64,000 nt of DNA from Diplonema japonicum (taxonomy: Eukaryota > Protista > Euglenozoa: Diplonemea): assembly GCA_964019335.1 (NCBI GenBank), contig OZ025652.1:682001-746000 (forward strand), in the 5' to 3' direction. Within the stretch, counting starts at the first letter, position 1. Each line of letters begins with the position of its first letter. The notes beneath the pieces were generated by a model. That model saw only the letters and a program-made list of their open reading frames with translations, had not been told where the DNA came from and did no database searches. Position numbers and translations under genes: made by a program. Of the stretch, positions 12,662 to 64,000 are shown one piece after another.

Positions 12662-14099
12662 TCGTAAGCAGTGTAAGGGTGTATGCCTGTTACATTTTAT
12701 TTATTCTCTTAAAACGTTTATTCAAAAAAAAGAATAGGGGGACAGGGGGAGGGAAGAAAAGATGGAGGGATGAACGGTGGTGGAACATTTTACTAACAAA
12801 AAAAGGGGGGGGGAGGGAGGGGGAGGACAACAGAAGAAATCAAAGCCCGCACGTAGAAGAGAGAAAAAGAAAAAAAAAAAGAGAAAAAAGTAAAGGGGCA
12901 AAGGGGGACGATCATTTGCTACGTGTACGAAGTCGGGAAGTAAAGAAAAAATAAAAAAAAGAGTGCAATTTGTGGGTATGGGTTAAAGGGTGACTACAAG
13001 GGGAGGAAAAAAAAAGAGGGGGGCAGAAAAGGAACAAAGAGAGGAAGGCAGGCTATATCTTCAACAAATAAAACAAAAAAACCCCCACCCAGGGCAACAC
13101 TATTCTTCAATAAACACCTTATTGTTCCAATCTCGGACTCTGGGGGAAAAGAAAATGGAAACACTCAAACACCCATTCATGGGGAGGGAAAGAGGAGGGG
13201 GGAAAGGGGATTCTTTTTTTTTTCTTTCTTCCTTCCAAAGAAGGCCTTCACGCTGCTGCCTTTCATTGGTCACCTGTTTTTAGATATCTGGACACCTGGT
13301 CCTTGTTGGGGAAGAAGGAAATGACCAAAAAAAAAAGTGTTTAATAGCTTTTTTTTTATCTTGTTCTATTCCTACACAAAAAAAAAGGAGGGGGGAGTTA
13401 TGGTCATTGCAACTTGAGAAGCCAGCAAAGAAATCTCAAAAAAGTAAAACATAAATCCCCACCATCACAAAGTGTGTGGAGTTGCTTTAAATCTCAAAAA
13501 AAGAATAAGGGGAGGGGAGGGGGCAAATATTTTTTGCACCCAATATATTTGCAATTTTTTTTTTAATTCTTTAAAGATTTCTAATGACCATCGCCCATAT
13601 TCTTTTAAAACCTCTGCCCTACTTGCACCGGATTAAGAAGGAAAAAAAAAAAAAGAGAGGGTTATCAACTTACAAAAAAGAACAAAACTTACCCCCTTGA
13701 GGTACGTATTACCTGGGCCTGCAAGCTGTGGGCAAAAAAAAAAAATGATAATCAACTTTCGGATATGGGGGCGCTTTTTTTTTTTTTTTTTTTGAAATAA
13801 CAACAAAAATTGGGACGAGAGTGTGTACGGAGGGACGGGCGGGGAGGGGGGGGGGGGGGGGGGGGGGCACAAAGGGTAAATACAATAGTAATCATCATTA
13901 AGAGCATATGATTTCTTTTTTTCTTCTTTTTCTTTTTTTTTTCTTTCAATTTGTTTCATTCTTTTCATTTCTTTTATGGTAGGAGGAATGGAGGGCGGAG
14001 AAGTAAAATGTGTCAAATCGCAAAGATACAGGTTTTCTCTTTTTTTTTTTTGAAATATCCTAGGGAAAGAGAAGAACCAAAACCCGTCCCTCACCCTCC

Positions 14100-24693: not shown

Positions 24694-25827
24694 CTTCTTC
24701 CTACTGGGTTCCGGGTGTGGATGAGTCAAGAGAGAAGAGGGTCGTCATAGTCAGGGTGGTAGGTATACCACAAAGAGATTTAAGAGTAAAACACAAAGGG
24801 GTAAAAGAAACAGGGGGTGTGAGGGGGGGGGGGGGGGGGGGGGAGTTTTACCATAAATTCTGACCACATCTAATAGGGATATATGATTGTTTTTTTCTTT
24901 ACTTTTTTTTTTGTTTTTGCTTGTGTCTCCCTTCTAACTCGTCCGTTTGTTTTTCGAATGGGAGAATGAGGAAAGCCACAACCCAGGAAAAAGGAAAAAA
25001 AAAAAAAAAAAAAAAAAAAAGCTTAGTAAACTCCGACCATACTTCACAACAACAGGTCGTGGTGGTAGTGGGGGCAGGGGGAGGGGGAGGTCAAAAGCTG
25101 TCCACATTAGCATCTTTTCAATTCTATAATAAGTTGGTAATCTTTAGAAATGTTTGGGATTTTGTACCAGTGGCTTGACATGATATTTCCTGTCGTCGAA
25201 AACGACTCACTTGTATCACCATACCCACTCGTTAATTTAAAAACTCCACAGAATCGTGCAGTTATTCATGGGTTTTTGTGAAATGAAAAACGAAAAAAAG
25301 CTTAGTGTGAAAGCCTTGTGGACACATAGATATTCGACCTCTCTGGGAGGGAAAAAAAAGGGGGGGGGGCACTGGGAGTAATGCTCGCTTCCACAAAACA
25401 AAAAAAAAGAAGGAGAAGGACAAGGTGCTTTTTTTATTTATTATCATTCCCCTTTTTTTTTTCTTTAACCCCTCTTTTCTTTTTCTCTCTTCGATCTTTT
25501 TCTTTCTTTTGAAAAAAAAAAAGTTCAATAACAAAACCCCATTCCAACGCGACCAGGCCCATGCTCCTCATAAGGGAAAGGGAGCAGAAGGGAAAGCCTA
25601 GAAAAGACGAGATGAGAAGAAGAAGAAAAAGAAGGGAAGGTGAGGGTACATTTCAAATCTATCGGAAGAAGCGGATGGAGGATGGAGGTGGGAAACTGTT
25701 TTTTTTTTCTCTTTTTTTTTTTCGTTTCTCTTATTTTTTTTTTTATCAACTCCGGGCCAGACATAAAAGGAAGGAGAAATAAAAAAAGGAGAATAACTAA
25801 CACAAAAAAAAAAAAAAAAAAAAAGAA

Positions 25828-26147
25828 TGGGGCTTTGATTGCAACACTAGGTGGCGTGCAATGAAGCACGAACTACCTACTTGATTACAGAGGGCGCTCC
25901 TCGGCCGAGCAGTAGCTTCTTCTGCGTTCCGCGTCGTGTCCTTAATGCGTGCGGTGTGCTCAACCCTAGCCGGGGCGTCCCGGGTAACCAAGATTCTGCG
26001 CTCGTGCAGTTTGCTGCCTGTTCGTCACCCTGAGCATCTGCGTTACGTTCTTCCACTCGGGCGCTACCGGTGATGACCGACGAGGAGGTCAACAGCGAAC
26101 AACACATCTGATGTACTTCTTATATTTCCATGTTATCCCCACCACCT
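25828..26147. mobile_element. ~320-bp interspersed repeat, CpG-intact copy
   Basis: Colinear with 61265-61591 and partial copies at 56152-56363, 57678-58020 and 61820-63585; flanked by A-runs on both sides. Confidence 0.9.
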
Positions 26148-32211: not shown

Positions 32212-35200
32212 GTTGCCCGAGCCTACAATAGTGGTGCTGACATTAGGATAAAAAGATGGAAAAAAAAGAAAAAAGAACCGTGGAAACAAAAACTGGTAGG
32301 GACAACGCCCAAACAGGCTTCCTGTTAAGAAATAAGGTGCCATGGCAGAGTGGGAGCTTGGGCGCCACCTGTAGCCAAGATTCCGTTAAAAGAGAGGGAA
32401 AAAGAAAAGAGTCGGGATTGGGGGAGGGGGGGGGGGGGGGGGGGAAGGGGAACAAGAGAGGAAGTAATGGAAAAATAAAAAAATAAAGAAAAATGAACTG
32501 TCGATAAGAAAAAGGGAAAGGTGTTTAAGCTAAATAAAAACCTTTTATCCGTTTTTGTCATGACAGCTTTTTGATACTTCTGGGGTCTTTTTTTCTCTCT
32601 TTTTTTTTTTCTCTTTTAACACACGAGCTGTATCAAGTCGCTATTTTTTTTTTTGCCTGCTATAACACAGCAGGGTAACAGGTGTGGGCGAAGAGAGAAA
32701 AAAAAAATAGATATCTATCCCTAGAGGATGGACACGTGAGCGCTTTTGAAAAATAAGGGGGGTAGAGGCCAAAAGGCGCAGGCCCCAAGAAGAAAGGGAG
32801 GGTATGGTTGGTACTAGGTATCTCTCAGTTTCTGACATAACTCTCGACTCCTCCGGTTGCTGTCTTCTTCAGGCGAGAGGCACCTTCACGGCTCAACTAG
32901 TTGGTTGGAGAGTACTGTTCTCGGGGGGGGGATGTTTTTTTCTTTCTTTCTTGTGGGGGGGGTCCCCTTCTTTTTGCCTCAGTTTTATTTGATATTATTT
33001 TTTTTTTCCGTACGAAAAGATAAGAAATGCTTTGCACGGTATTCATTGCAACAAAATAAAGAGCAATTTTCTTTCTCTTTTATTTATTTATTTTATTTTT
33101 TTTTTTTTTACAAACGACAAACTATTACAGTTGGCTATCGCAACAGAGGAGCAAGGGAAGACAGCAGAAGTTCTTGACATACGGGGGGGTAATGATCAGC
33201 AAGTGGAACGGGGGAAAAAAATAGAAAATGGATGAAAATAAATAAGGATCGGGAAACTTTTTCTTCTCTCCTTTTATTTTTCCTAGACATTTCCTTTTCT
33301 TTTCCCCTCCCCTTTTGCTCCCAATAAAATAAGAACAAAAATCGTTTTAAACTGGATGGTATATATATATATTTTTGCATATATATATATATATATATTT
33401 TTTTTTTTTCTTCTTTTTTAAAAAAGAGGTTGTGTGTAGCACTAAAAATAATTGGGGGAAGAAATGGTTGGAATAACCAATGGCACAAGGTGTCCCCCCT
33501 TCTTTTCCTTCTCTTTCCCTATTACAAGACAAAAGATGTAGACAGGCAAAGTATGTCTTAGTTCCTTTTTTTTTTTTTTTTTCGCTTATCTTTCTAGTTT
33601 TTTCGAAAGATTCCTGAAACTAGTTTAAAACAAGCGAGGGTCAATGGACTTTTTTTCTCTTTTTTTTTCCTCTTATAACCCTATAGACGATGCCGTTGCT
33701 CCCTGCTGGCGTACGTAATAATCTATCACCCGATTGTATCGTGCAGCCGGAAAAAATGCATCGAACATTAGAAGGCTGAGGTACAGGGAAGAGAGAGCAA
33801 GTTTAGAGAAGAAAAAGAAAAAAAAGACAAGAATCGTATAAAGGTGTCTTTCTTTCTTTCTTTTTTTTTTTTTTTTTTTTTTTGCAATAACAATTCTTTT
33901 TCAAAGTTTGTTGACTTGCTCCAGCAGAAAAAAAAACCCCCCTCCGAACCCTCCTCCTACGGAAGAAAATATATAAGGGGGAAAAAAAAAAGGGGGGGCG
34001 GGGGAAGATAGAAGTGGGCTTTCGAAGATCAGGAGAAAAAAAAATGAAGTTTAACTGTGGTCATTCAGTCAATCTTTACTTTTTTTTTTGCGCCCCTCCT
34101 ATAAAAAAAAAAAGAGAACATAGAAAAAAAGGGCAGAAACCAGCACCAGAATATCCTAGGGCTCTTCTGCCCTAAGCGGATTAAGGGGTAGGGATTAGTA
34201 GAGAGTTGGGGGAGGGGGGCAATAAAATTCTTTTCCCTCACATGCTTAATTAAAGAGCGTTGTCCTAGAGGGTGAATCGCTGCAATATTGCCAAGTTCGA
34301 CCGTTTTCCCCCTTTTATTATCATCACTTTTTTTTTTTTCTCCTTCCTAAGGACAGGGTTTTCAATTCACATTCTAATTTGTGGAATGAGGGTTGGGTTT
34401 TTTTGGGGTTTTTTTTTTTAAAAGGGGGTAATTCGATACGGCCAAAATTGATTCGTTTTCTTTTTTTTTTTTGATGTATGTTACAATGAAATATGAGGGA
34501 TGATAAAAGTGTACCTTTTATTTTTTTTTTTAGATTCTGGAGGTTGGGAATGGAGAGAAAAAAAGAAAGTGGCGAAATTGTGCATGAGTAGTATTTGCCT
34601 AATAAAATAACTCATCATGCTTGACCTTCTTCTTGTATTTAGTTTTGACAATAAATTATTGTTAAAACACAAAAAAGGGGGGGGGGGTCGAGGAAGCGCT
34701 TGCGATACAAAATAAAAGCGTCAGCTTTGAGAAAGGAAGGGGAGGGGGGGGGGGGGGGGAAAGAGAGACTCAAAATGGAAGAAGTAAAGAAAGAAGGGGA
34801 AAAAAAAAAGGTAATGGACACACTGGAGAGAATGGACCTATTCAAAAATATAAAAAAAAAGAAATAGGTAGGAAAGTAAATACAAGTGCAAATAATCTTT
34901 TTTTTTTTCGACCCTCCTCCCTTTAAAAAAAAAGGGGGGAGAGCGTCCCCATCTTCCTCGATAAAGGCAGAACACGTCACCACACACACAATAGGAAGAA
35001 GGTAGCCAAAAAAGGGGTTCACCCCCTTTTCAAGCTTTTTTTTTTTGCTGCATGATTCTTCCAGTTTAAACCTTTTTATTTCTGTTTTTTTTCCCGCGTT
35101 TCTTATTTCATCTTTTTTTTTCTCGTCCTTTTTTTTTTTGTTCGTTATCTTCTCTTCTCTATGCTGCTTTAACCTGTAAAGCCAAGAATCCATTCTTTGG

Positions 35201-43872: not shown

Positions 43873-45172
43873 TTAGGAGGACGAAGAGGAGGATGTCGAA
43901 GAAGAAGACGACGACGACGATGATGACGAGCTAGACGTGCGCAACCTTGCCTTCTGGGGGCGGGGGGGGTCGCTGGGTTTCTCTTTGCTCTCTTTTTCGT
44001 TGTCCTTTGTGTTATGCGAGTGCTGTGTCTCAGATTCCGAGCGCCTGCCACGCTGCCACCTATCCGTGCGTGAGGGCGCCTCTTTGGTGCCTCTCTCCAC
44101 GCCCCTGTCCCTATTCCGGTCTCTGTTCCCGTCTCTTGTGTCCCTCTCGTATCTGTCCCTTCTGTCAGGTCCATCCCTCAACCTGTCCCTGTCTCTCCTG
44201 TCCCTATCCCGATCTCTGTCGTCTCTACCCCTGTTCCTATCCGCGTACCGCGGCCCACTGTCTCCTCTTCCCCTGTAGTCCCTATGCCTATCTCTATCAT
44301 ATCTGTCCCTATTGTCTTGGTCATATCTGTCTCTGTTGGTTTGGTCATATCTGTCGTACCTATTCCTGTCGCCTCCTCCATCTCTATCTCTTCCAGCTCT
44401 TCCGTATGCAAGCGGTCTATCTCCATCTCTACCCCGATCTCTGTCCCTGTCTCCGTTCCTGTCCCTATCCCTGTCCCTGTCTCTGTCTCCGTTCCTGTCT
44501 CTGTCTCCGTTCCTGTCCCTGTCCCTATCTCTGTCCCTTTCCCTATCTCCGTTCCTGTCTCTGTCCCTGTCCCTATCTCTGTCCAAATTCCGTTCACTCG
44601 GTTTCTTGTTGGTTGGGTTACATTTGTACCTTGCACGTTGCATACCTGCTGTGGTTGTGGTGTTGTTGGTATCTTTCGCTTGACGAGCTTAGCTGTGACG
44701 GCCGACCCGTCCAACACTGGTCTGTTGGAGAGGTGCGCTACGGCCTGCAGGGGTGCGTGATTGGTGCATAACATACCTCAACGGCTGCACTGTCAGTGGC
44801 GAACTCAACCCATGCAGTGGCACCGGTGAACTGGAAGAGCGTGTCAGGCGTCCTGCCCTCCACTCGCTTGATCTCACCATGTTTAGAAAGAATCTCCCGC
44901 AGGTGCTCCTCTGTGACGTTCCCCGTCAATCCTGCTAGTTGTACAAATATTCTGAAGTCCCTCTCTTTTGACTTCTGGGCCCGCTTTACGTCTTCATTTC
45001 CAGAAGGCTCTTCCTTCTCCTTCTCCTTCTCCTTCTCCTTCTCCTTCGTTGGCGTGTCGACTGACTTCTCCTTCTCTGTTTCCCCTTCCTTCACCATGTC
45101 ATGGTCATCGTTGCTTTGCATGCCAGTTTTCGTGGGCTCTTCACTGTCGTTTCGTTCCTCTGCAGCTTGCAT
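43873..45172 (-). CDS. RRM protein with RD-rich and Ser-rich tail (RNPS1/SR45-like splicing factor)
   Basis: VQLAGLTGNVTEEHLREILSKHGEIKRV...AWVEF RRM; introns 44745-44776 and 44605-44645; long (DR)n region and poly-Ser. Confidence 0.75.
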
Positions 45173-48115: not shown

Positions 48116-49489
48116 AGATAAAAAAATATTTTCGCTTCTTTGACAATATTTTTTTTTTTTTTTTGCTCCTGTTATACAATCCTCTTTTTCTTTTTTTTTC
48201 CAAGAATTCTTTAGATGAATAGACCTTTAGCAAAAAAAAAAAAAAAAAAAAGAAAAAGAAAACCCTCCTTAATTATTATTCCCATAAAGGACCTTTTAAA
48301 CAAAAATACCGGTGTCAGCACGAAGCCGGGTGACTGCTTGTATAAGTCAGGGAAAACCCCCATTGGCCCAACAGCCGCTCATACGTAATTCACAAAGCAG
48401 CAGAAAAAGCAACCCCCTCCTCGGATACAAAACTGAATTGCCTTCCAATTTATTTTTCTTTCAACTAACAACAAAGAGGGGGAGGGGGGTGATGGGTCCT
48501 TTATGGTTTTTTTTAAAGAAAGGACCCTCCCCCCTCCCCCCTCCCCCGGGACCTTAATAGGAACGTTTTAAAAAAGAAACCACGACATTCCCCTCTTCAA
48601 TACAGCACATTGAGATTACAAATGAATGAAATTGAAAAACGGGTGTGAGGGGTGCGCGGTTGGAAGGAAAGAACACATGGTGTAAAGAGCATAAGGGAGT
48701 AACCGGCCTTTGCGGGGGTATTTCTAATTTTTCTAATTTTTTTTTTTTTTGCGCCTCCCTTATACTTACTTGCTTTAATGGGGTGTGGGAGGTGTCTCCT
48801 TTTTTTTCAGAAGGATAGAAAGAATAAGAAAGTCAGAGAAGGGGGGAGGAAAGTTAGATCTCGCAGGAATACACATTGTGGGCGTAGTTTTTTTTTTTTT
48901 TTTTCTTTTTTTTTCTTTTTTTTTTTTTCTTCTTCTTCTTCCAGTCTATCACCTTCCTTTAATTCTGATCCATAAAGAAAGAGAAGAAGAGTGGGGGGGG
49001 ATCACACCCATATCCCTAAAACCCGTATGGCACTACATGTGGCACTACATATGAAAATTACTATTTTTTTTTCCCCAAACAATAGCTGAAATGGACTCGT
49101 TTCGCGACTCTCTTTGATGATTGAGCATCCCAATCTGTTTTATTTTGTTTTTCCCTATCTTATTTTTTATTTTTTTTTCTCTGACAATTGATCGAGTGCA
49201 TTTTCCGGGGTAGAACATTGGAAAGTGTCCTCTAGCAATTTTGAAGTTGGTTCTTGCATTGATTGAACGCCAGAAATCTTGTGAAAGTTATTCCTAAAAT
49301 TCCCTCCATCCTCCCTTATCATTCAGGCCATGACGGGTTTCAAGGATACGAAGCGTTGAAAAGGTGCTGAGGGTATGGAACCTCTACATCTTTTTTTTTT
49401 TTTTTTTTTTCTCTGTCTTCTCTCAATTATCTCTTCAGTACTTGTTTCTAAAAAAGTGCCAAAAAAAGCGAAGTAAAAAAAAAAAAAAG

Positions 49490-49527
<38 letters not shown>

Positions 49528-49796
49528 ATACAGTGCACGTGTACCATTATGAGTGGTCGTAAGACTTAATTCAAGCATTACTAGTAGGAGAAAAAAAAAA
49601 CAAGGGGAGGAGTGGGATAGGGGTTTTTCTTTGTTTTTTTTTTTTTTTTTAGTAGGTGAACACACACAATTATGGAAAGGGTAGAAAAACCATGTGAAAG
49701 AAAGCAAAAGGCGTGGGTACATGCATATAAAATCCCTCTTCTTTTTCCCTCTCTTTACCTGTCGGTCTGTCAGATCTTTTACTCTCCTTGATATCC

Positions 49797-53451: not shown

Positions 53452-55439
53452 TCAGGACGGTCCTGTGCTCGCCTTGCAAGCCGCACAGCTACTCACGCAG
53501 AGTCAGATGCCAACGGAACAGGGAGCTCACCCGGCGGAGTTTGTATGGCAGGCTACGCGGGCATGGAGCTCCTTGAGGTACTTGTACAGGTCATCTACAG
53601 TGGGGTTGACGAGCGGCTTTGGGGCTTCATTCAGAAGCACCAGAGTGTCATTCATAATCTCCAAGCACGGCAACAACGACGGCTGGCTGAGCGTCCCCCC
53701 TAAGGAAGAGGGACTGGGTGATGACGGTGGTGTGAATCCCGCAAAGGCTGTCTGTATGGTTGATGTGATTGTTTCTTTAATGATCTTGTTCTGGTCTTTA
53801 AGTTCCTTTATCTCTTTATTGAGCAGCTCTATCTCCTTCTGTGACTCCTCCAGTTGCATCCCTACAACTTGTGCGTTCTCGGTGGCCTCTTGAAGTTTAT
53901 AACTGAAATTATCATTCATAGACCCCACATGTGCAAGCAGCAGAGCCGGTAGGTCATCTTCAGGCCCACCAGGCCCCCCTGTAACTTCGCGTACGGCGCC
54001 CAGTAGCTTCTTGTGCTGTTCGCGCATAGCAGGCGGGGGGCTGAAAATGTCTTTGCCCTTAAACAGTGGGTGCATCTCTGGCGTGTGGTTTGGAGACGAA
54101 GATATGTGTCTATTGCTATTCTTTCGTGTTGGAGGTTCTACTGGGGTGCTGGGAGGACACTCAGGGGTGTTATGAGAAGGTGTAGGCCGCTTGTCAGGCT
54201 TCAGGCCACCACGCAACTGCTTGAATTTAAATGAAAAAATAACTTGCTTCCGTACAGCAGCACGCACATCGCTGACAGTGCTGACTGGTATCCTGTTCAC
54301 ATGGGTTAGCATCCATCCCAAAAACTTCGGCGCACCACACCTTTCTGCTGCCGAGAAAGGCTCCACCCTCTCAAGAATAAGCTGTGTGTCACCTCTAAAT
54401 ACAGCACCAATTATCTCGTTTAATTGCTTATCAAACACAATCTCACATGCAGGATCGACAAGGGTGTTCTCGACAGTGTACACCGACAACCCGCGCCCCG
54501 TTGTGATCAAGAGTCTCTCGTTGGACACACCCACCATGCGTAGGCACTTGTCCTGTGTGGGGAAGACCGTCAAGGGGGGGATCTCGTGCTCTTTGTTTGT
54601 GATCCATCTGCTCCAAACTGCAACATAGGCGTTGTTGTCGACCACAGCAGCAACGTGAGAAGTGGTGAGTGTGAGGTTTGTGCCTCCCTTTACACTGCAC
54701 CAGACGCAGTTCCGCGTATCGGCGCTCCATGCTCTGATGTTTGCTTTATCACAGCTCCAAACAACATCCTGGTCAGTATCTACATGCAACATTGTGACTG
54801 CCTCGCTGCACTTCAGGAGGCTGGGTCTTCTGCTTGAGCCCTCTCCGTCAGCAGCCGCACCGTACTTTTCCCACACTCGGATAGTTTTGTCAAATCCACA
54901 AGACCAAACCACTCCTGCGTTGCTGCTAAACGGAACATGTGCCTGTAGTTGCTAAAAGTTGTTCTTAGTCATACCACATCGTACACTTCGCCCCTGTGCC
55001 CCGCTACCTTAGCCACCGCTTTATTGCCTTCCCATATCTTCAAGTAGCCGTCAGTCGAGCAACTCCATAATACTGGCTTTCCAGGCTTGTCAGCGATTAT
55101 CCGCAGTGCCATCACCTTTGATGCATGTGCTGCCCACGAGGAGTCGGCAGCACCTGTGTTGAATGATGTAACACGTCCGGACAAGCAACCGACGAAGCCT
55201 CTTTCAGGGGCATCTGCAATCACGATACAAGTGACAATATCTTGGGGCACAGGTGTGCGCATTTGATTGGTCCCAAAGGGTACAATGCGATTCTTCTCAA
55301 CATTGAAACTGTTTACACCAATACCGTCACCTTCACACCATATCTTCGTACCTCTTTCGTCTGTAGCAACGACTTTGTATCCCTTTGGTGTGGGGTGTGT
55401 GAACTGCTTCACCCCAAGCAAAACTCGTTCCTCGCCCAT
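53452..55439 (-). CDS. WD40-repeat protein with PDZ-like domain and coiled coil
   Basis: WSCSTDGYLKIW, WSCGFDKTIRVW; PDZ-like IGAVF..LERVEPFSAAERCG...LTHVNRIPV; introns 54943-54974 and 53489-53530. Confidence 0.8.
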
Positions 55440-55540: not shown

Positions 55541-55546
<6 letters not shown>

Positions 55547-55584
55547 ATTTAAGGGTACCTGCGGTATGTGGCAGGACGCCTGAA
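55541..55584. repeat. 44-bp repeat following a poly(A) run (second copy 61628-61671)
   Basis: agagacatttaagggtacctgcggtatgtggcaggacgcctgaa; the second copy differs only at the two CpGs. Confidence 0.85.
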
Positions 55585-56151
55585 TAAAAATAAATTGATT
55601 TTCATCAAGGTGCAATTGACATCACACTAACAAAAGCTACTCACTGTCATTAACTCTAAGAGTTAATGATATGAAAATGAAATACTAAACATGATGACAA
55701 TTCAGCAACAATGTTGACCACCAATACAGACATTGGAAGTACCAAAGTGCAATAGCTTCAGGAAAAAGGAAAAGAAAAACAAGTGGCCATAAAGGTGGCA
55801 CGCTGCAAGCAGTGTTGGCAAGGTGTCTTAAAATCATAATCAATTGTGGAAATTGAGGGGGGTGAGATCAACAGACAGGCACTCATGCAGTTTGCGCCTG
55901 TTCATCACCCTGAACATCTGCATTTTGGACCCACAATTTTGTGGTACTCACCCCCAATATGAATGTGAAGGCGGCCACTGTTAGTGGTCTTGTAGTTAGG
56001 TGCTTCCTCACCTTTTGGGAGGGCTGCAGGCCCTGTGCTCCAGTGCATTGTTTGGCCTTATAACAACATCCCAACGAACTCTATTGTGACCTAACTCATT
56101 TCGTGTGGGGAAAAAAAATAATGGCAATAATGGGATGGTTAAATTATATAT

Positions 56152-56363
56152 GAGTTAAAGGAGGCCGGTGTTGGCGGCGCCCTGCGCAAAAACTGTCTAC
56201 TTGATTACAGGGGCACACCGCGGCCGAGTTGTAGCTTCTTCTGCGTTCCGCGTTGTGTCCTTAATGCGTGCGGTGTACAGCTCAACCCTAGCCGGGGCGT
56301 CCCGGGTAACCAAGATTCTGCGCTCGTGCAGTTTACTGCCTGTTCGTCACCCTGAGTATCTGC
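56152..56363. mobile_element. Truncated copy of the 320-bp element, alternative end variant, mostly CpG-intact
   Basis: Shares ctacttgattacag...gtcaccctgag with 25828-26147. Confidence 0.85.
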
Positions 56364-56495
56364 TTTATTTATAAAAAAAAAGAAAAAAGAGGGAGGTTAA
56401 AGCCCAACTCACAGCCTTCACATGGCACCTCCTGTAAGTAAGCTTTGGCTGAAACCAATGTGAGCTATGGTAAACAAAAACAAAGATAGACAAGG

Positions 56496-56624
56496 GTGAG
56501 AAGGGTAGGTTTTAAATGAGAAGAGTTAACAGAAGGAAGCCAAAGAGAGCAGTAGTTTAAAAGTGAATTGGCAAGGGGGAAAAGAGGGAGGAGAAGCAGA
56601 TGAAAGGGAAAAGAAACATGCAAA
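56496..56624. repeat. ~130-bp purine-rich repeat (second copy 59996-60125)
   Basis: gagttaacagaaggaagccaaagagagcagtag...gggaaaagaaacatgcaa occurs twice. Confidence 0.85.
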
Positions 56625-56965
56625 CAGTGTTGGGTATGACCCCTCCCCTTGGCCGAAAAATGGGACAAGAGGGGAACCTCGGAGTGTGAGCAGTGTTGGT
56701 CAGTCCCATCCCATTCCCTAAAACGGAATACGGGCCTGGATGGGACTCATAGGACTCCACGGGACGGGACTCAACAGGACTCACAGGACTCTCCCCAACA
56801 CTGTCATTATTTTTGATAGTTTTGCAACTTTTTTTCTTCTTTTTTTTTCCCTTTGGAAAAAAAAAAAAAAATATATAGGGGGAAAAAAAAGAGAAAAAAA
56901 TCCTTGATTAAAGGACCTGCACAAGACTACTTGATTACAGGTGTGGTGTTCAGCTCAACTCCAGC

Positions 56966-58310
56966 CAGTGTTGGTCCAGACCCTTGAGGGACTCAGGGGA
57001 CTCCAAGGGACAGGACAGGAGTCCCCTGAAATTTTCAGGGGTCTGGAGGGGACTCAGGGGACTCAGGGGACTGGAGGGACTCAAGGGACTCAGGGGACTC
57101 AGGGGTCTGGAGGGGACTCAGGGGACTCTTGGGACCAAAAAATTTCTTTGTGTTTTTTGTGTCACAAAGGCCCAAATTTAGGCTGGGGCTTGCATTTTTT
57201 TGGCACTTTTGGTTTCAAAGGTTCAAAAAAAGAGGTCCTAGGTTTGGGTGGGACGTGAGGCAAGGCTCATACTACCTTGTTGTGACTATGTAAAAAAAAA
57301 AAAAAAAAAAAAAAAAATAAAATAAAAATAAAAAAAATGTCAGGGGGTTTGGAGACCTGCTTTGAAAAAAATATTAAAAAGAGGCCTTTGCAAGAAAAGT
57401 ACAAAGCAAAAAAAAAAAAAAAAAAAAAAAAGTAAAAAAAAGGGATGGGCAGTGCTGGCCAGACTGGTGGTCTGAGGGGTCTGGCCCACAAACCACCCCA
57501 ACACTGCAAATTTTCGACACACATGATGTATGCAACACAGGGTGCACAACACAGCATGTGTTTTATAACATGTACCACTATGCTGCACAGGGAAAAGCAG
57601 GTGTCACAATGCACCTCTTGGTGCACAATATACAAAAGGGAAAAAAAAAAAAAAAAAAAACTTTTATCTTCTTTTTCAGGTGGTGGGGATAACATGAAAA
57701 TATAAGAAAAACATCAGATGTGTTGTTCACTGTTGACCTCCTCATCTGTCATCACTGAGCAAACCACACAAGCACAGAATCTTAGTTACCTGGGGTGCCC
57801 TGGCTGGGGTTGAGCTGAACACCACACACATTAAGGACACAACACAGAACGCAGAAGAAGCTACAACCCGGCCATCCGGCCATTGTGATTAAGGAAATGA
57901 CATGGAACACAAAAAGCTACAACTCGGCCACGGTGATTAAGGACACAATGCAGAACACAGAAGAAGCTACATCCTGGCCATGGTGATTAAGGAAACGATG
58001 CAGAAAGAAGCTACAATCTGTGTGATAAAATGTGAGAAGACAAGAAAAAAAGAAGGAAAAAAAAAAAGGTAAACACATCATGTATGTCAAAAAGAAAATC
58101 AAGGATTTTTTTCTCTTTTTTTTTCCCCATTTTTTTTTTTCCAAAGAGAAAAAAAAAAAAAAAGTTGCAAAACTATCAAAAATAATGACAGTGTTGGGAA
58201 GAGTCCCATGAGTCCCATGAGTCCCGTTGAGTCCCGTCCCGTGGAGTCCCATGAGTCCCATCCAGGCCTGTATTCCGTTTTAGGGGACGGGACGGGACTG
58301 ACCAACACTG
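56966..58310. mobile_element. Non-autonomous DNA transposon derivative, CAGTGTTGGTC TIRs, 7-bp TSD CTCCAGC
   Basis: TIR CAGTGTTGGTC/GACCAACACTG; TSD at 56959-56965 and 58311-58317; subterminal GGGACTC arrays inverted at the two ends; splits a copy of the 320-bp element. Confidence 0.75.
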
Positions 58311-59612
58311 CTCCAGCCAGGGTGTCCTGGGTAACCAAGATTCTGCTCATGCAGGGGTGGGTCCCTTCCACCAAACTGAAAGTCGGAACTTGGCAGAATG
58401 GCAGAACTGGAACTTGGTGGAACAGGGAATTCCTTACCTTTTTTTTTGTTTTAACAATATTATTGTCAAGACTAAAAACTAGTTGATGGCAGCATAATGA
58501 GCTATTTTATTAGATAAAATTCCACTTGTGCACACAAACAAAAGGAGTGTCAAACTAGTTTTTTTTTTTTTTATTTCACTCTTCAGAAATTACTTCACAC
58601 TGGGGGGCCCATTGCTTCACACTAAATCTCATTACTTCACAGTGAAATAATGGCCTGTTTTCCGTGAAGTAATAGGGGGTTTCTGTTAAATAATATGCCT
58701 TGGTAGGCCAATTTTTGCCTTGGTTTGGTTCCCAGTGGGGCTACTTTTTCCTCTCAGTTTGCTATTTCCCCCCAGGTTCAGCTCAATTGGCCAACTTTTG
58801 CCTCAGCTCAGTTCCAAGTTGGACTACTTTTTTCCTCCCAATTTGCCCACTTTTGGTGTCTGCCAAGTTCCAGTTCCACTGTTCCACCAAGTTCCAACTT
58901 TTCAGTTTGGTGGAAGGGAACAAAACGACCCACCCCTGCATGAGCAGAATCTTGGTTACCTGGGATGCCCTGGCTGGGGTTGAACTGAACCTTGGGTGGA
59001 AAGGCAATATTGGGGTTGAAAGGTCCCAGGATTGAGGTGAAGAAGGTGCCACCACTGACACACTGCTATTGTTGGCAAAGTACTGGAGGTGAAGGAGGTT
59101 GCAGCCAAGAAGAAAGACCAACTGCTATTGCTGGGCAAAGAACCAAAAAAGTGAAATAAATTCCAAGAAAAAAAAAAAAAAAAAGCAAGTAAGAGGTAAA
59201 AGGTTTGAATACATGGTTAAATGGGCTATTAAATTCTTTTTTGATTAAGTAACCACAGCTGGGTACTTTAATTTTCAACCCATTTTGGCAACACTGGTAA
59301 AAATCTTGATTAGGAGATTTACACTTACTTTTAAATTCTTTTTTGATTAGGTAACCACAGCTGGGAAACCTACTTCAAGGAGCATTTTGCTTATCATCAC
59401 CCAAAAATTAGGCCAAAATTCCAAAAATACCATTCTAAAATGTTTTCTTGATTTTGTGATTTTCAGGTGGCCATTTAGACCCAAGGAAAATTCCTAAAGT
59501 GATTTTTGAAAGATTCAGTCCAAGTGGGGTCAAAACTTTCTATTGGCTGTTCAGAATTCCATTTTCAGGACCAAATTGGGTGTTCAAAAAAAAAATTTTT
59601 TTTTTACCCTCC

Positions 59613-59995
59613 CAGTGTTGTTATAAGAATGAGTTGCCCCCCTGAAATTTTTGGATTTTTACTTACTTTTTACTTCAGAATATAGTTTAGAGATGTGTAT
59701 TCCACCTAAACACCTTTCTGAACTTTTTGGTTTGCAGAAATGGGTTTATAAGGTGTTTTTAATATAAATTTCATGATTTCTGGCTTTTTCCAGAAAAAAA
59801 TTTTGGGGTCAAAAAATGGCCAAAGTGACCCCAAGTTTGGGGTCCCCTGGGAAAAAAAATTTTTTTTTTTGGCCAAAAATTTCCAAAAAAGTCTGTTTTG
59901 AGGGCACTATATAAATAAGGGTCCTGGTTAGAAAAAAAAATTTTTTTGCCCTCCCACCCCCCCACCCCCCTGGGTTTTTTCCTGTAACAACACTG
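59613..59995. mobile_element. MITE-like element with CAGTGTTGTTA TIRs
   Basis: CAGTGTTGTTATAAG ... CTGTAACAACACTG; no clean TSD found. Confidence 0.55.
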
Positions 59996-61264
59996 GTGAG
60001 AGGGTAGGTTTTAAATGATGAGAAGAGTTAACAGAAGGAAGCCAAAGAGAGCAGTAGTGAAAAAGTGAATTGACAAGGGGGGAAAAAGGGAGGAGAAGCA
60101 GATGAAAGGGAAAAGAAACATGCAAGAGGGAACAAGCCCTCCAAGCCAATCCCAAAGCATGGAATAACCCTACACTGCAGATCCAAGCTTGAGTACCACC
60201 CAACATCAACACTTAGGCACTGCCAAAGGCAGACCAGGTGTTGCTCACTCCTTTAATTGGAACCCCTCACAAGTGTAAAAAACATCTCCCTCCCACCTAC
60301 CTCCCTCTATCATTTGTGTTTATCAGTGTTTTATGAGGAAAAGGGGAAAGAAAAAAAAAGGAAAGGAGAAGAGGTAAAAAACCCACTTCTATTTTTTGGC
60401 AAATACTTGTAGATAAAGGACCCACAATTTTGTGGTATGAGTACTCACCCCCTCCCCAAAAGGTGAGAAAGCACCTGTTAAAAACTAGCAAGCTATGATT
60501 TGCTTGTGTTCTTCTTTTTTTGACTCTTTGATTTCTGTTTTCCCTTTCCCCCACCCCCACACACCCCCCTGGCTGGGAGGAGGGAAAAAGAAAGAAGAGA
60601 GAATGGTCTGGCCAGCCTAAAAAAAAAGAGGTTTATTTTTATAGCTATTTACTGCCAACAAGTAATGACTTTACCATTACCTCAAGGTTCTGCATTTTAC
60701 TGTAAGGGACTGCAGGGCCTAAGATGGTAAAGTGCAGAACCAAGAGGTTGGTAAAGCATTACTTGGTGGTAGGTAAGTGGTTTTATTTCACAACACTCAG
60801 AAATTACTTCACCATGAGGGGCACAACAGGGTGACAAGGGGTACAACAGGAGAGGGGTTACAAAGGTTACAATACAAGTTGTTTTTCCTCCTTTTGTTGA
60901 CTAAGAGCTGCTGCTGTTGCTGGCATTGCCACTGTCACCATCTCTAATCAGGCCTTCCCATACCTAGTGTGGCCACTGGCAGTGGGTGAATCCTAATTAG
61001 GACTAGACTGGACTGGACCAGACCAGACCGGATCTGGTGTGAATTTCGACCCAATTATGCCAGACTGACTGGACTGACCAGACTGGACCGGACCGGACTG
61101 GACTGGACTGAACCAGACCGTACAAGATACAACCACAACACCACATCCCCCCCTTTTTTTGCTGCAGAGTTCAAACATATAAACAGATGTCTACAAGAAA
61201 AGATGTTACACAGGTACTGAGAGACAACAACAACAACGAGAAACAAAGAAAAAAAAAAAAAAAC

Positions 61265-61591
61265 TGGGGCTTTGATTGCAACACTAGGTGGCATTAAGCA
61301 TGCAATGAAGCAAGAACTACCTACTTGATTACAGGGGGCACTCCTCAGCTGAGTTGTAGCTTCTTCTGTGTTCTGTGTTGTGTCCTTAATGCATGTGGTG
61401 TACTCAACCCTAGCTGGGGCGTCCCAGGTAACCAAGATTCTGTGCTCATGCAGTTTGCTGCCTGTTTGTCACCCTGAGCATCTGTGTTACGTTCTTCCAC
61501 TTGGGCACTACTGGTGATGACCGACAAGGAGGTCAACAGTGAACAACACATCTGATGTGCTTCTTATATTTCCATGTTATCCCCACCACCT
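61265..61591. mobile_element. Full-length CpG-depleted copy of the 320-bp element
   Basis: Colinear with 25828-26147. Confidence 0.9.
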
Positions 61592-61819
61592 TAATAAAAA
61601 AAAAAAAAAAAAAAAAAGAAAAAGAAAAGAGACATTTAAGGGTACCTGCAGTATGTGGCAGGACACCTGAAGAGTCTCAATCTATCTCTTGATCGAACCT
61701 TTCTGCTGTGGTGTGGCCTTTGGCCCCTCATTCACCCTCCTCAGTACCTTAGGTATAAAACCCTCAACCGAGTTGGTAAAAAAAAAAAAAAAAAAAAAAA
61801 AACTTTTATCTTCTTTTTA

Positions 61820-63150
61820 TGAAAATATAAGAAAAACATCAGATGTGTTATTTGCTGTTGACCTCCTCATCGGTCATCACCAAGCAAACCACACGAGTGC
61901 AGAATCTTGGTTACCCAGGGTGCCCCGGCTAGGGTTCAGCTGAACCCCACACACATTAAGGACATGACACGGAGCACAGAAGAAGCTACAACTCAGCCGC
62001 AGTGATTAAGGACACGATGCAGAATGCAGAAGAAGCTACAACCCAGCTGCAGTGCACCCCCTGTAATCAAGTAGACAGTTCTTGTGCAGGGCACTGCCAA
62101 CACCGGCCTCCTTTAACTCTTGTATATTATTCCAAAGGTGGTGGGGATAGCATGAAAAAACATCAGATGTGTTGTTCACTGTTGACCTCCTCATTGGTCA
62201 TCACCAGTAGCTCCCGAGTGGAAGAACATAATGCAGATGCTTAGGGTGACAAACAGGCAGCAAACTACACCACACACATTAAAGACATGACACAGAATGC
62301 AGAAGAAGCTACAACTCAGTTGTGGTGCACCCCTGTAATCAAGCAGACAGTTCTTGTGCAGGGCACCACCAACACTGGCCTCTTTTAACTCATATATATA
62401 TCATTCAGGTGGTGGGGATAACATGGAAATATAAGAAGTACATCAGATGTGTTGTTTGCTGTTGACCTCCATGTTGGTCATCACCAGTAGTGCCCAAGTG
62501 GAGAACATAATGCAGATGCTCAGGGTGATGAATTGGCAGCAAACTGCATGAGTGCAGAATCTTGGTTACCCCAGGTTGCTATGGCTGGGGTTAAGCTGCA
62601 CACTGCACACATTAAGAACACAACACAGAACACAGAAGAAGCTACAACTCAGCTGCAGTGCCCCCCTGTATCAAGTTAACAGTTCTTGTGCAGGCACCAC
62701 CAACACAATGAACAGGCATTTCCTCCATCCACTTGGCCGGTCATCACCTGTAGCACCCTGAGTGGAAGAACAAATTGCAGATGCTCAGGGTGAGTAAACT
62801 ACTTAGGGCACCAGCTGGGGTTGAGCTGCACACTGCATGCATTAAGGACATGACACGGAATGCAGCAGCAGCCAAGGTGCACCCCCTGTCACTGGTCTCC
62901 TTTACCTCTTTCATGTTATTTGGTGGTGGGGATCACAGAAATATGGAAATATAAGAAGTACATCAGATGTGTTGTTTGCTGTTGACCTCCATGTTGGTCA
63001 TCACCAATTGTGCCCGAGTGGAGGAACATATTGCAGATGCTCAGGGTGATGAACTGGCAGCAAACTACACAGGCCCAGAATCTTGGTTACCAGGGCCATG
63101 GCTGGTGTTGAGCTGCACACTGCACACATTAAGGACACAACACAGAATAT
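61820..63150. repeat. Head-to-tail tandem array (~5 degenerate units) of the 320-bp element in reverse orientation
   Basis: ggtggtggggata...catcagatgtgttg...gaatcttggttacc...cctttaactc recurs at about 61820, 62137, 62407 and 62921. Confidence 0.85.
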
Positions 63151-64000
63151 TGTGCTGTCAGTGTTGTGGTGATATAGTCACCACTTTCAACCTTGATGAT
63201 GCAAAGAGGAAAAAAAAGGGGGGGGGGGGAAACTACTTTGACACTCCATTTGTTTGTGTGCATGAGCAGAATTTTACCTAATAAAATAGCTCATTATGCT
63301 GCCATCAACTAGTTTTTAGTCTTGACAATAATATTGTTAAAACAAAAAAAAAAGTAAGGAATTCCCTGTTCCACCAAGTTCCGGTTTTGCCATTCTGCCA
63401 AGTTCCGACTTTCAGTTTGGCAGAAGGGAATGGAACAACCCAATCCTGCACAAGCAGAATCTTGGTTACCCAGGACACCCCGGCTGGGGTTGAGCTGAAC
63501 ACCACACACATTAAGGACACAACACAGAATGCAGAAGAAGCTACAACTCAGCTGTGGTGTACCCCCTGTGTCCTTTAACTCATATATCTCTCACCACAGC
63601 CAGGTTGTAGCTTCTTCTGTGTTCCACATTGATCACCACAGCTGGGTTGTATTACATCCAAATACAACATTTCCAGACATTTGTACATACCTGCAGCTGC
63701 AGTGCACCAGAGTAGATAGGTGCAAATGGCTTGATGGAGCTGTGCATGTCTGTGGTATGAAGAAGAAGAAAAAGAAAAAAAAAAAAAAAAATCATTGTCC
63801 AAAAATATTTGAAAAAAAAGTGTTTGCAGGTGTGTCAAAAATTGCAGAAAATTTTTGAGTCTGGTCAGTCTGGCTGATCTGGTCAGTCTGGTCAGTCTGG
63901 TAAAATGGGTACACCAGACTGGACCGGATTCACCCATCACTGCCACTGGCTCCTTTTTTTCTGCTGCTTCAGTATTTTGAAGTCTTTTGGGGTGCTTGGG

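Follow-up and report, generated by a model that had tools for sequence, protein, structure and literature searches.

We have analysed a stretch of 64,000 nucleotides from Diplonema japonicum strain YPF1604 (GenBank assembly GCA_964019335.1, peDipJapo1.1, contig OZ025652.1, chromosome 5, positions 682,001 to 746,000 of the forward strand; called the window below, and the frame of all coordinates given without a chromosome or locus). The subject is a non-coding repeat element of 327 bp, one copy of which (copy B, 61265-61591, plus strand) has lost most of its CpG dinucleotides and is nearly unchanged elsewhere. We have found that this CpG decay depends on residence in a sharply bounded domain, and not on being a repeat. 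There is one decay domain per chromosome, and the decay in it is CpG-specific, strand-intermixed, place-dependent and sharp-bordered. Domain-restricted CpG methylation, followed by deamination of 5-methylcytosine (5mC), would explain these features, and we give this reading a probability of about 0.8. While the mechanism itself has known parallels, its restriction to a single island on each chromosome, located at a strand switch and in a euglenozoan, is new. An earlier reading made from the letters of the window alone (the sequence-only reading) had taken the organism for a probable diplonemid, which is correct, and had attributed the decay to a process targeted at repeats.

Copy B was compared with copy A (25828-26147, plus strand) by pairwise alignment. 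The 25 CpGs of copy A correspond in copy B to 3 CG, 13 TG, 8 CA and 1 transversion (CACG>CAAG), and at non-CpG sites the two copies differ by 5 substitutions and one 7-nt indel. These counts reproduce those that the sequence-only reading had obtained by eye. The indel is a deletion in copy A, also present in L002, and not an insertion in copy B. The changes were polarised by a consensus built from 30 near-identical genomic copies, which is 327 bp long, holds 26 CpG and has a CpG observed/expected ratio (o/e) of 1.04. Against this consensus, copy B shows 3 CG, 13 TG, 9 CA and 1 other state at the 26 CpG sites. That is, 23/26 CpG sites are changed versus 4/275 non-CpG positions (Fisher p=2.6e-27), and there are 22 transitions at the 26 CpG sites versus 2 C>T at 129 non-CpG C/G sites. 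Copy B thus diverges from the consensus by only 1.5% at non-CpG sites (98.5% identical), and the earlier statement that the changes are CpG-specific transitions on both strands stands. The loss in the element spans all CpG contexts, GCGC and others alike.

One point raised with the sequence-only reading was whether the CpG-rich copies could be the derived ones. Given the 26 CpG of the 30-copy consensus, the CpG-rich state is ancestral for the element, because it is carried by the young dispersed majority and because the same sites are TG in one decayed copy and CA in another. In addition, TG and CA are interspersed along copy B (12 runs versus 11.6 expected, runs test), and its TG/CA states agree with those of other decayed copies at chance level only (9/16, 10/17, 9/18 and 11/19, ~50%). 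Together these observations indicate that copy B has decayed independently and in place, through many separate hits on both strands. A 44-nt repeat of family D18 has twins at ~55542-55584 and 61629-61671, and two CG>CA changes are the sole differences between them, in agreement with the earlier description of the copy at 61628 as having lost both CpGs and being otherwise unchanged. Short Logan contigs of four runs over 55701-61700 agree with the sequence in independent runs.

We then aligned every collected element fragment to the consensus and compared sets of fragments by the CpG kept and by the non-CpG divergence. The 30 dispersed young copies keep 772/778 CpG at a non-CpG divergence of 0.4%. 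For 27 fragments in CpG-poor domains (deserts) of nine chromosomes, the corresponding values are 70/430 (189 TG, 152 CA) and 5.7%, and for 3 older copies in CpG-normal DNA (L028:1168, L019:2406 and the border fragment 56191-56367) they are 46/58 and 4.0%. Desert fragments and older copies in CpG-normal DNA differ strongly in CpG retention (Fisher p=6e-22). Since near-identical copies elsewhere, in the hundreds, have all their CpGs and the older outside copies have kept theirs to such an extent, the proposal of a repeat-targeted process does not survive. Instead, retention follows the CpG o/e of the non-element DNA on the flanks (Spearman 0.81, n=59). The flanks of the young copies have a median o/e of 0.81; eleven other deserts lie between 0.12 and 0.45.

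The clean independent cases of decay are copy B and L053:690-1009 on chromosome 6, which are also the two youngest full-length desert copies. At 1.5% non-CpG divergence they have lost 84% of their CpG, i.e., they show ~60 times more change per CpG cytosine than C>T per non-CpG cytosine, a rough figure as it involves 4 non-CpG events. Outside the deserts, the ratio of change between CpG and non-CpG cytosines is ~3.4. We rejected pooling the desert fragments as independent events, because several of them are copies of blocks that had already decayed.

The desert that contains copy B extends over 8850 bp (56401-~65250), with a GC content of 42.9%, 55 CpG and a CpG o/e of 0.135; its far end, at chr5:747,250, lies 1.25 kb beyond the 64,000-nt window. 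Gene-array spacers of matching GC (42.6%) have an o/e of 0.666 and open reading frames (ORFs) one of 0.736, so that genes and their flanking spacers keep CpG, as had been stated. The desert is enriched in TpG (o/e 1.37) and CpA (o/e 1.28). Its borders are sharp, with dense CpGs as far as 56,345 and once more from 65,254; the boundary marked by the element fragment at 56191-56367 is sharper than ~300 bp. The earlier description of most of 58.4-64 kb as nearly CpG-free is confirmed, though this range was drawn too narrowly. In composition the desert is an ORF-free island made of repeats throughout; no Pfam domain was found among its ten longest ORFs, and no satellite array was found by Tandem Repeats Finder (TRF).

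Not everything in the deserts has decayed where it now stands. The repeat families of the 2.1-kb CpG-free core occupy one place per chromosome and had been CpG-poor before spreading between domains. We have therefore rejected the reading of this core as wholly in-situ decay. Similarly, blocks covering consensus positions 59-327 occur at 62407-62676 and 62922-63147, with further copies on chromosomes 27, 104, 6 and 73. The block at 62407-62676 has 75-100% of its TG/CA states in common with L044:171-447, L047:2498-2773, L053:2807-3082 and L050:620-794, which indicates that such blocks were copied or exchanged between the islands of different chromosomes after decaying. On chromosome 2, three decayed copies with identical states stand at 54842, 56169 and 57495, spaced by ~1.33 kb; they form a local tandem duplication inside the island. 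Beyond the window there is also a second CpG-poor patch (L036:1950-2750, ~65.95-66.75 kb, o/e 0-0.31), which lies past the first plus-strand ORF and overlaps the start of a 774-aa ORF without a Pfam match.

The distribution of decay over the genome was examined by genotyping. We searched a 35-letter element pattern with pyrimidine-purine (YR) at six CpG sites and read the matched bases; the tallies below were made by hand, so that miscounts are possible. The pattern has 745 matches in the genome, 100 of which are listed, covering chromosomes 1-14. Among the 100 listed matches, all six CpG are kept in 50, five in 14, four in 6, three in 3, two in 9, one in 7 and none in 11. Retention is thus bimodal (>=5/6 in 64, <=2/6 in 27). 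The sequence-only reading had asked for such bimodality as a sign of repeat-targeted bursts; the bimodality is indeed there genome-wide, but the split follows location. All 30 listed copies with <=3 CpG are found in ten narrow clusters, each on a different chromosome. Chromosomes 1, 6 and 10, for example, have their clusters at 651-653, 824-830 and 657-661 kb, respectively.

Two more patterns, designed to pick out decayed states, gave 114 matches (100 listed) and 53 matches (all listed). Among the matches listed there are 151 multi-site-decayed copies on 65 chromosomes, and each of these chromosomes has one cluster of <=16 kb; the off-cluster matches among those listed are two copies, each with a single change. 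Within the clusters, retention is graded from 0 to 5 of 6 CpG. Desert-specific repeats mark the same places on the 18 chromosomes checked and add about a dozen chromosomes. Of the 54 clusters placed from the 114-match pattern, about half lie within ~20 kb of one chromosome end, never of both, and ~15 are clearly internal.

The position of the desert relative to the genes is equally regular. All long ORFs between 44 and 54,912 of the window are on the minus strand. In the 40 kb beyond the window, which we also read for ORFs, plus-strand ORFs begin at ~65,235 (L036:1235-1915) and continue onward, with an STT3 gene among them. The desert thus fills precisely the gap between two divergent gene arrays, one on the minus and one on the plus strand, and this gap is a strand-switch region. 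The corresponding rule for the genome, minus strand to the left of the cluster and plus strand to the right, was tested on protein-kinase and helicase genes and hand-checked. There are 131 kinase matches, of which 104 are on chromosomes with a known cluster and 100/104 fit the rule; for the 97 helicase matches these numbers are 80 and 77/80. Taken together, 177/184 genes point away from the cluster, and a plus-strand gene before a minus-strand gene was seen on no chromosome among the kinase and helicase genes. This polarity makes each chromosome look like a single divergent switch with arm-long arrays and a CpG desert at the switch. As examples, chromosome 14 has a minus-strand gene at 538 kb, its cluster at 553 kb and a plus-strand gene at 676 kb, and chromosome 11 has them at 469 kb, 477-482 kb and 632 kb, respectively.

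The seven exceptions are all on chromosomes 20 and 64, the only ones with a decayed cluster away from the inferred switch. On chromosome 20 the cluster is at 474-479 kb and the genes at 89-375 kb are all on the plus strand; on chromosome 64 the cluster is at 141-144 kb and the genes at 236-277 kb are all on the minus strand. Both chromosomes may be genuine exceptions, or their scaffolds may be wrongly oriented.

The element itself is non-coding, carries an A-run after its 3' end, and exists in many dispersed, near-identical copies. It appears to be a SINE-like (short interspersed nuclear element-like), non-autonomous, poly(A)-tailed retroposon. Its core pattern has at least 745 matches in the genome and there are at least 1401 candidate places, of which the best 40 are 97-98% identical to copy A. 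No tRNA, 7SL or 5S origin with an RNA polymerase III promoter was seen for the element's head, as Rfam and ARAGORN gave no match. Copy B is of full length and has its own poly(A) tail, and is a recent insertion.

A profile search of the genome with PF00145 has revealed five genes: one DNMT5, three DNMT2-like and one M.HhaI-like. The DNMT5 orthologue (L040:2102-8398) is 2098 aa long, with PF00145 at 471-850, SNF2 at 1414-1764 and Helicase_C at 1958-2068. Its match to Cryptococcus Dnmt5 (7r76) has E=2e-234 and consists of five stretches between residues 436 and 2090; the catalytic motifs MCSGTE, AGT-C, ILENV and GNAMTT are conserved in that alignment, and judged by its sequence the gene is intact. 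The three DNMT2-like paralogues are at L032, L033 and L034 (chromosomes 10, 36 and 11), the same number as reported for Diplonema papillatum. The M.HhaI-like gene (L031:1063-2550; chromosome 74, 154.2-155.7 kb) encodes a protein of 495 aa that is extended N-terminally by 146 aa. The sequences most similar to it (64% and 42% identity) come from eukaryotic transcriptomes and ENA contigs, followed by haptophyte, dinoflagellate and bacterial enzymes, and it is a candidate de novo methylase or DNMT6-like RNA enzyme. As the loss covers all CpG contexts beyond GCGC, an HhaI-like enzyme alone would not explain the decay. Among the five PF00145 matches there is no DNMT1-, DNMT3-, RID- or Dim-2-like gene, and the profile search of the genome found no APOBEC_N domain. 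Of the methyltransferases and deaminases proposed earlier for a search, DNMT5 has thus been found, and DNMT1, DNMT3, a RID-like enzyme and APOBEC_N have not.

Based on the above analyses, the following course of events can be proposed. The retroposon copy B inserted recently into the 8.85-kb repeat-only island between the gene arrays. The island, unlike the arrays, would be densely CpG-methylated on both strands, with the DNMT5 orthologue (a C5-methyltransferase joined to an SNF2 ATPase) as the likely writer. Since a newly inserted copy had to become methylated, de novo activity should be present in the island, and an additional activity of this kind may assist DNMT5. The 5mC would then deaminate to T, and an unrepaired T:G mismatch would turn CpG into TpG after a hit on the top strand or into CpA after one on the bottom strand. 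In the transcribed arrays, copies would be unmethylated and hence intact. The methylation of the island, DNMT5 as its writer, the de novo methylation of insertions and the protection of transcribed arrays are all what we infer from the pattern of decay and the gene content. The CpG-specific rate (~60-fold per cytosine) calls for cytosine methylation or something equivalent to it.

Several points weigh against this explanation. The pooled desert counts are partly pseudo-replicated, as many fragments have decayed states in common by descent, and no more than 3 older copies, with 58 CpG sites between them, serve as the control outside the deserts. The desert is all repeat-derived and has no unique DNA inside, so that the comparison covers repeats only. 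On the enzyme side, Cryptococcus Dnmt5 is strictly a maintenance enzyme, which leaves the methylation of a fresh insertion unexplained by it; no chromodomain was detected in residues 1-435 of the DNMT5 orthologue by Pfam at E<=0.01 (Pfam alone was used), and the profile search of the genome showed no SRA/UHRF1-like reader domain.

Four other explanations need to be considered. Repeat-induced point mutation (RIP) is set off by duplication irrespective of where the duplicates are located; it depends on RID, and its preferred context in Neurospora is CpA. A RIP-like, homology-triggered mutator, which would recognise duplicates and hypermutate them in bursts, e.g., premeiotically, fits the density of the C>T/G>A changes, their confinement to repeats in a desert that consists of repeats only, and the genome-wide bimodality of retention per copy. 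Yet at least 40 copies that are 97-100% mutually identical, on different chromosomes, keep all 26 CpGs; 64/100 listed copies keep >=5/6 CpG (50 of them 6/6), and the older copies outside the deserts keep 79%. Only CpG is affected, and cytosines in other contexts are nearly unchanged. TG and CA are mixed without strand-coordinated runs (the runs tests on independent copies are near expectation), retention within clusters is graded from 0 to 5 of 6, and the PF00145 matches include no RID-like or Dim-2-like gene. On account of the intact dispersed copies we reject an active RIP-like mutator, which the sequence-only reading had entertained, as highly improbable. We think even less of age as the sole cause, i.e., of CpG being hypermutable over the whole genome and desert copies being old survivors where deletion is slow. 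Most desert fragments are indeed older (5-7% non-CpG divergence) than the dispersed copies (0.4%), and CpG o/e is mildly low genome-wide (~0.7). But copy B and L053:690 are young by the same measure and have nevertheless lost 84% of their CpG, when copies at 4-5.6% divergence in CpG-normal DNA have lost 21%; spacers of equal GC stand at an o/e of 0.67, and the desert borders are sharp. The youth of copy B is enough to reject this explanation.

It is also conceivable that copy B was copied from a decayed source, by retroposition or segmental duplication, so that nothing happened in situ. This does hold for other parts of the deserts: the consensus 59-327 blocks with 75-100% common states across chromosomes, the copies of family X, which are all CpG-poor with common states, and the three identical copies 1.33 kb apart on chromosome 2. 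For copy B it is very unlikely, because its TG/CA states match other decayed copies at chance only, and because it is a full-length copy that carries a poly(A) tail of its own and matches the young consensus at 98.5% of the non-CpG sites. Finally, the island could decay without methylation, through a CpG-preferring deaminase or through deficient repair of U:G or T:G in heterochromatin. The 5mC of the island is deduced from sequence, no SRA reader was found in the profile search, and the restriction to a domain could reflect chromatin state instead of 5mC. On the other side, that search found no APOBEC_N domain, symmetric 5mC is known to leave changes that are strictly CpG-specific and affect both strands, and there are an intact DNMT5 gene and a report of 5mC in Diplonema DNA, so we consider a cause independent of methylation unlikely.

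Domain-restricted methylation followed by deamination resembles several known systems in part. Vertebrate genomes are methylated almost throughout, and all repeat copies in them decay. As in vertebrate repeats such as Alu, CpG>TpG/CpA changes on both strands lie far above other substitutions relative to a CpG-rich consensus. The decay in D. japonicum differs from the vertebrate case in being limited to one island per chromosome, of ~9 kb where sized (decayed copies span <=16 kb), and the rate excess looks larger, at ~60 times per cytosine by the rough estimate from 4 non-CpG events. Neurospora RIP and the CpG-biased hypermutation of transposable elements (TEs) in some basidiomycetes also produce dense, repeat-inactivating C>T/G>A changes, but unlike RIP, the process here leaves duplicates outside the island untouched, and no RID-like gene was found among the PF00145 matches. 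Cryptococcus neoformans, where Huff & Zilberman reportedly described Dnmt5-dependent CG methylation in 2014, is alike in several respects. In both, DNMT5 is the only canonical candidate CpG methylase (the others here being three DNMT2-like and one of bacterial type, M.HhaI-like), and there are a few TE-graveyard domains, about one per chromosome and some at chromosome ends, with genes spared. On the other hand, methylation in D. japonicum is read from its mutational scar only, and this organism, a euglenozoan, has polycistronic gene arrays and base J, and its domain lies at a divergent strand switch. Unlike with Cryptococcus Dnmt5, a fresh insertion is affected, which would imply de novo activity, and neither a chromodomain nor an SRA partner was detected by the domain searches described above. 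The Cryptococcus enzyme methylates transposon-rich centromeres and subtelomeres and is maintenance-only (Catania et al., 10.1101/149385).

Previous studies have touched on parts of this picture. According to Section 8 of the supplement to Valach et al. 2023 (PMC10161547), which refers to van Leeuwen et al. 1998, 5mC has been detected experimentally in Diplonema nuclear DNA. The same authors give five DNMT-family genes for D. papillatum and propose that repeats are repressed by 5mC. DNMT5 orthologues have been noted in euglenozoans (Sarre et al. 2025, PMC12344493), and the genome note on D. japonicum (PMC13598402) makes no mention of methylation, centromeres or telomeres. In the literature we found neither a methylome of a diplonemid nor any report that describes CpG decay or RIP-like mutation in this group. 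The sequence-only reading, which knew of no precedent in Euglenozoa, has to be qualified, as bulk 5mC in Diplonema and DNMT5 in euglenozoans had been published. In trypanosomes, the centromeres are found within degenerate retroelements that separate directional gene clusters (Obado et al. 2007, PMC1868937). The D. japonicum domains are alike in being one region per chromosome between directional gene clusters and in holding degenerate retroelements; the trypanosomatid centromeres have been mapped functionally, without a reported 5mC footprint, whereas a centromere role in D. japonicum is conjecture.

Diplonemids are among the most abundant heterotrophic protists of the sea, and their chromatin biology is almost unknown. 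To our knowledge there is no methylome for any euglenozoan with DNMT5. The scar of CpG decay would provide a map, drawn from sequence, of past cytosine methylation, with one small island per chromosome where the arrays diverge. On most chromosomes it supplies coordinates at which 5mC, candidate centromeres and start zones of transcription or replication can be tested. The scar further suggests that Discoba share with a fungus the DNMT5-type methylation of TE-rich chromosomal landmarks, and it implies de novo methylation activity in an organism in which DNMT1 and DNMT3 were not detected. A bolder idea is that each of the ~118 chromosomes has one DNMT5-methylated island of dead repeats, which is at once its sole divergent switch and its centromere, its sole zone of transcription initiation or replication origin, or both; we offer this tentatively, with the odds somewhat against it. 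If it is true, two arm-long unidirectional arrays leave the island, and only one does where the island is at a chromosome end. Leishmania has single origin/centromere strand-switch sites, and the island would be their 5mC-marked equivalent.

Table 1. Features of the window around the retroposon copies and the CpG desert (window coordinates).
Feature	Position	Strand	Description
Copy B	61265..61591	+	full-length young SINE-like retroposon copy; 23/26 CpG sites lost (13 TG, 9 CA, 1 transversion)
Copy A	25828..26147	+	intact, in spacer within minus-strand gene array; 25/25 CpG; flank CpG o/e 0.77
Short repeat after the poly(A) of copy B	61629..61671	+	family D18; twin at ~55542-55584
CpG desert	56401..64000, on to ~65250	.	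repeat-only island between divergent gene arrays; o/e 0.135
Border fragment of the element, just outside the desert	56191..56367	+	older, 8/142 non-CpG changes; 13/16 CpG kept
Decayed element fragment	57678..57873	-	2/16 CpG kept
CpG-free stretch, 2.1 kb	58927..61028	.	2103-bp run 58926-61029; other repeat families, e.g. 59342-59995, 59995-60638
Run of nested or rearranged decayed element fragments	61819..62356	-	61819-61881, 61883-61999, 61997-62084, 62136-62270, 62273-62356
Decayed fragment, consensus positions 59-327	62407..62676	-	0/22 CpG kept; block copied between deserts after decay
Decayed fragment	62922..63147	-	1/18 CpG kept; local duplicate of the 62407 block (14/15 states in common)
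Decayed fragment	63446..63569	-	1/13 CpG kept
Minus-array gene nearest the desert	53527..54792	-	from the ORF list
Homopolymer runs in gene spacers	e.g. 1390-1410, 13840-13866, 24820-24843, 32420-32445, 34740-34760, 49476-49530		

Two minor features of the gene arrays may be added. The gene spacers contain long homopolymer runs, with G runs of ~15-25 and A or T runs of up to ~50, which may be processing or trans-splicing signals, or targets for the insertion of poly(A) retroposons. Within overlapping ORFs at 43873-44771, a tandem repeat with a 12/18-nt period (CTGTCYCTRTCY-like) occupies positions 44387-44610.

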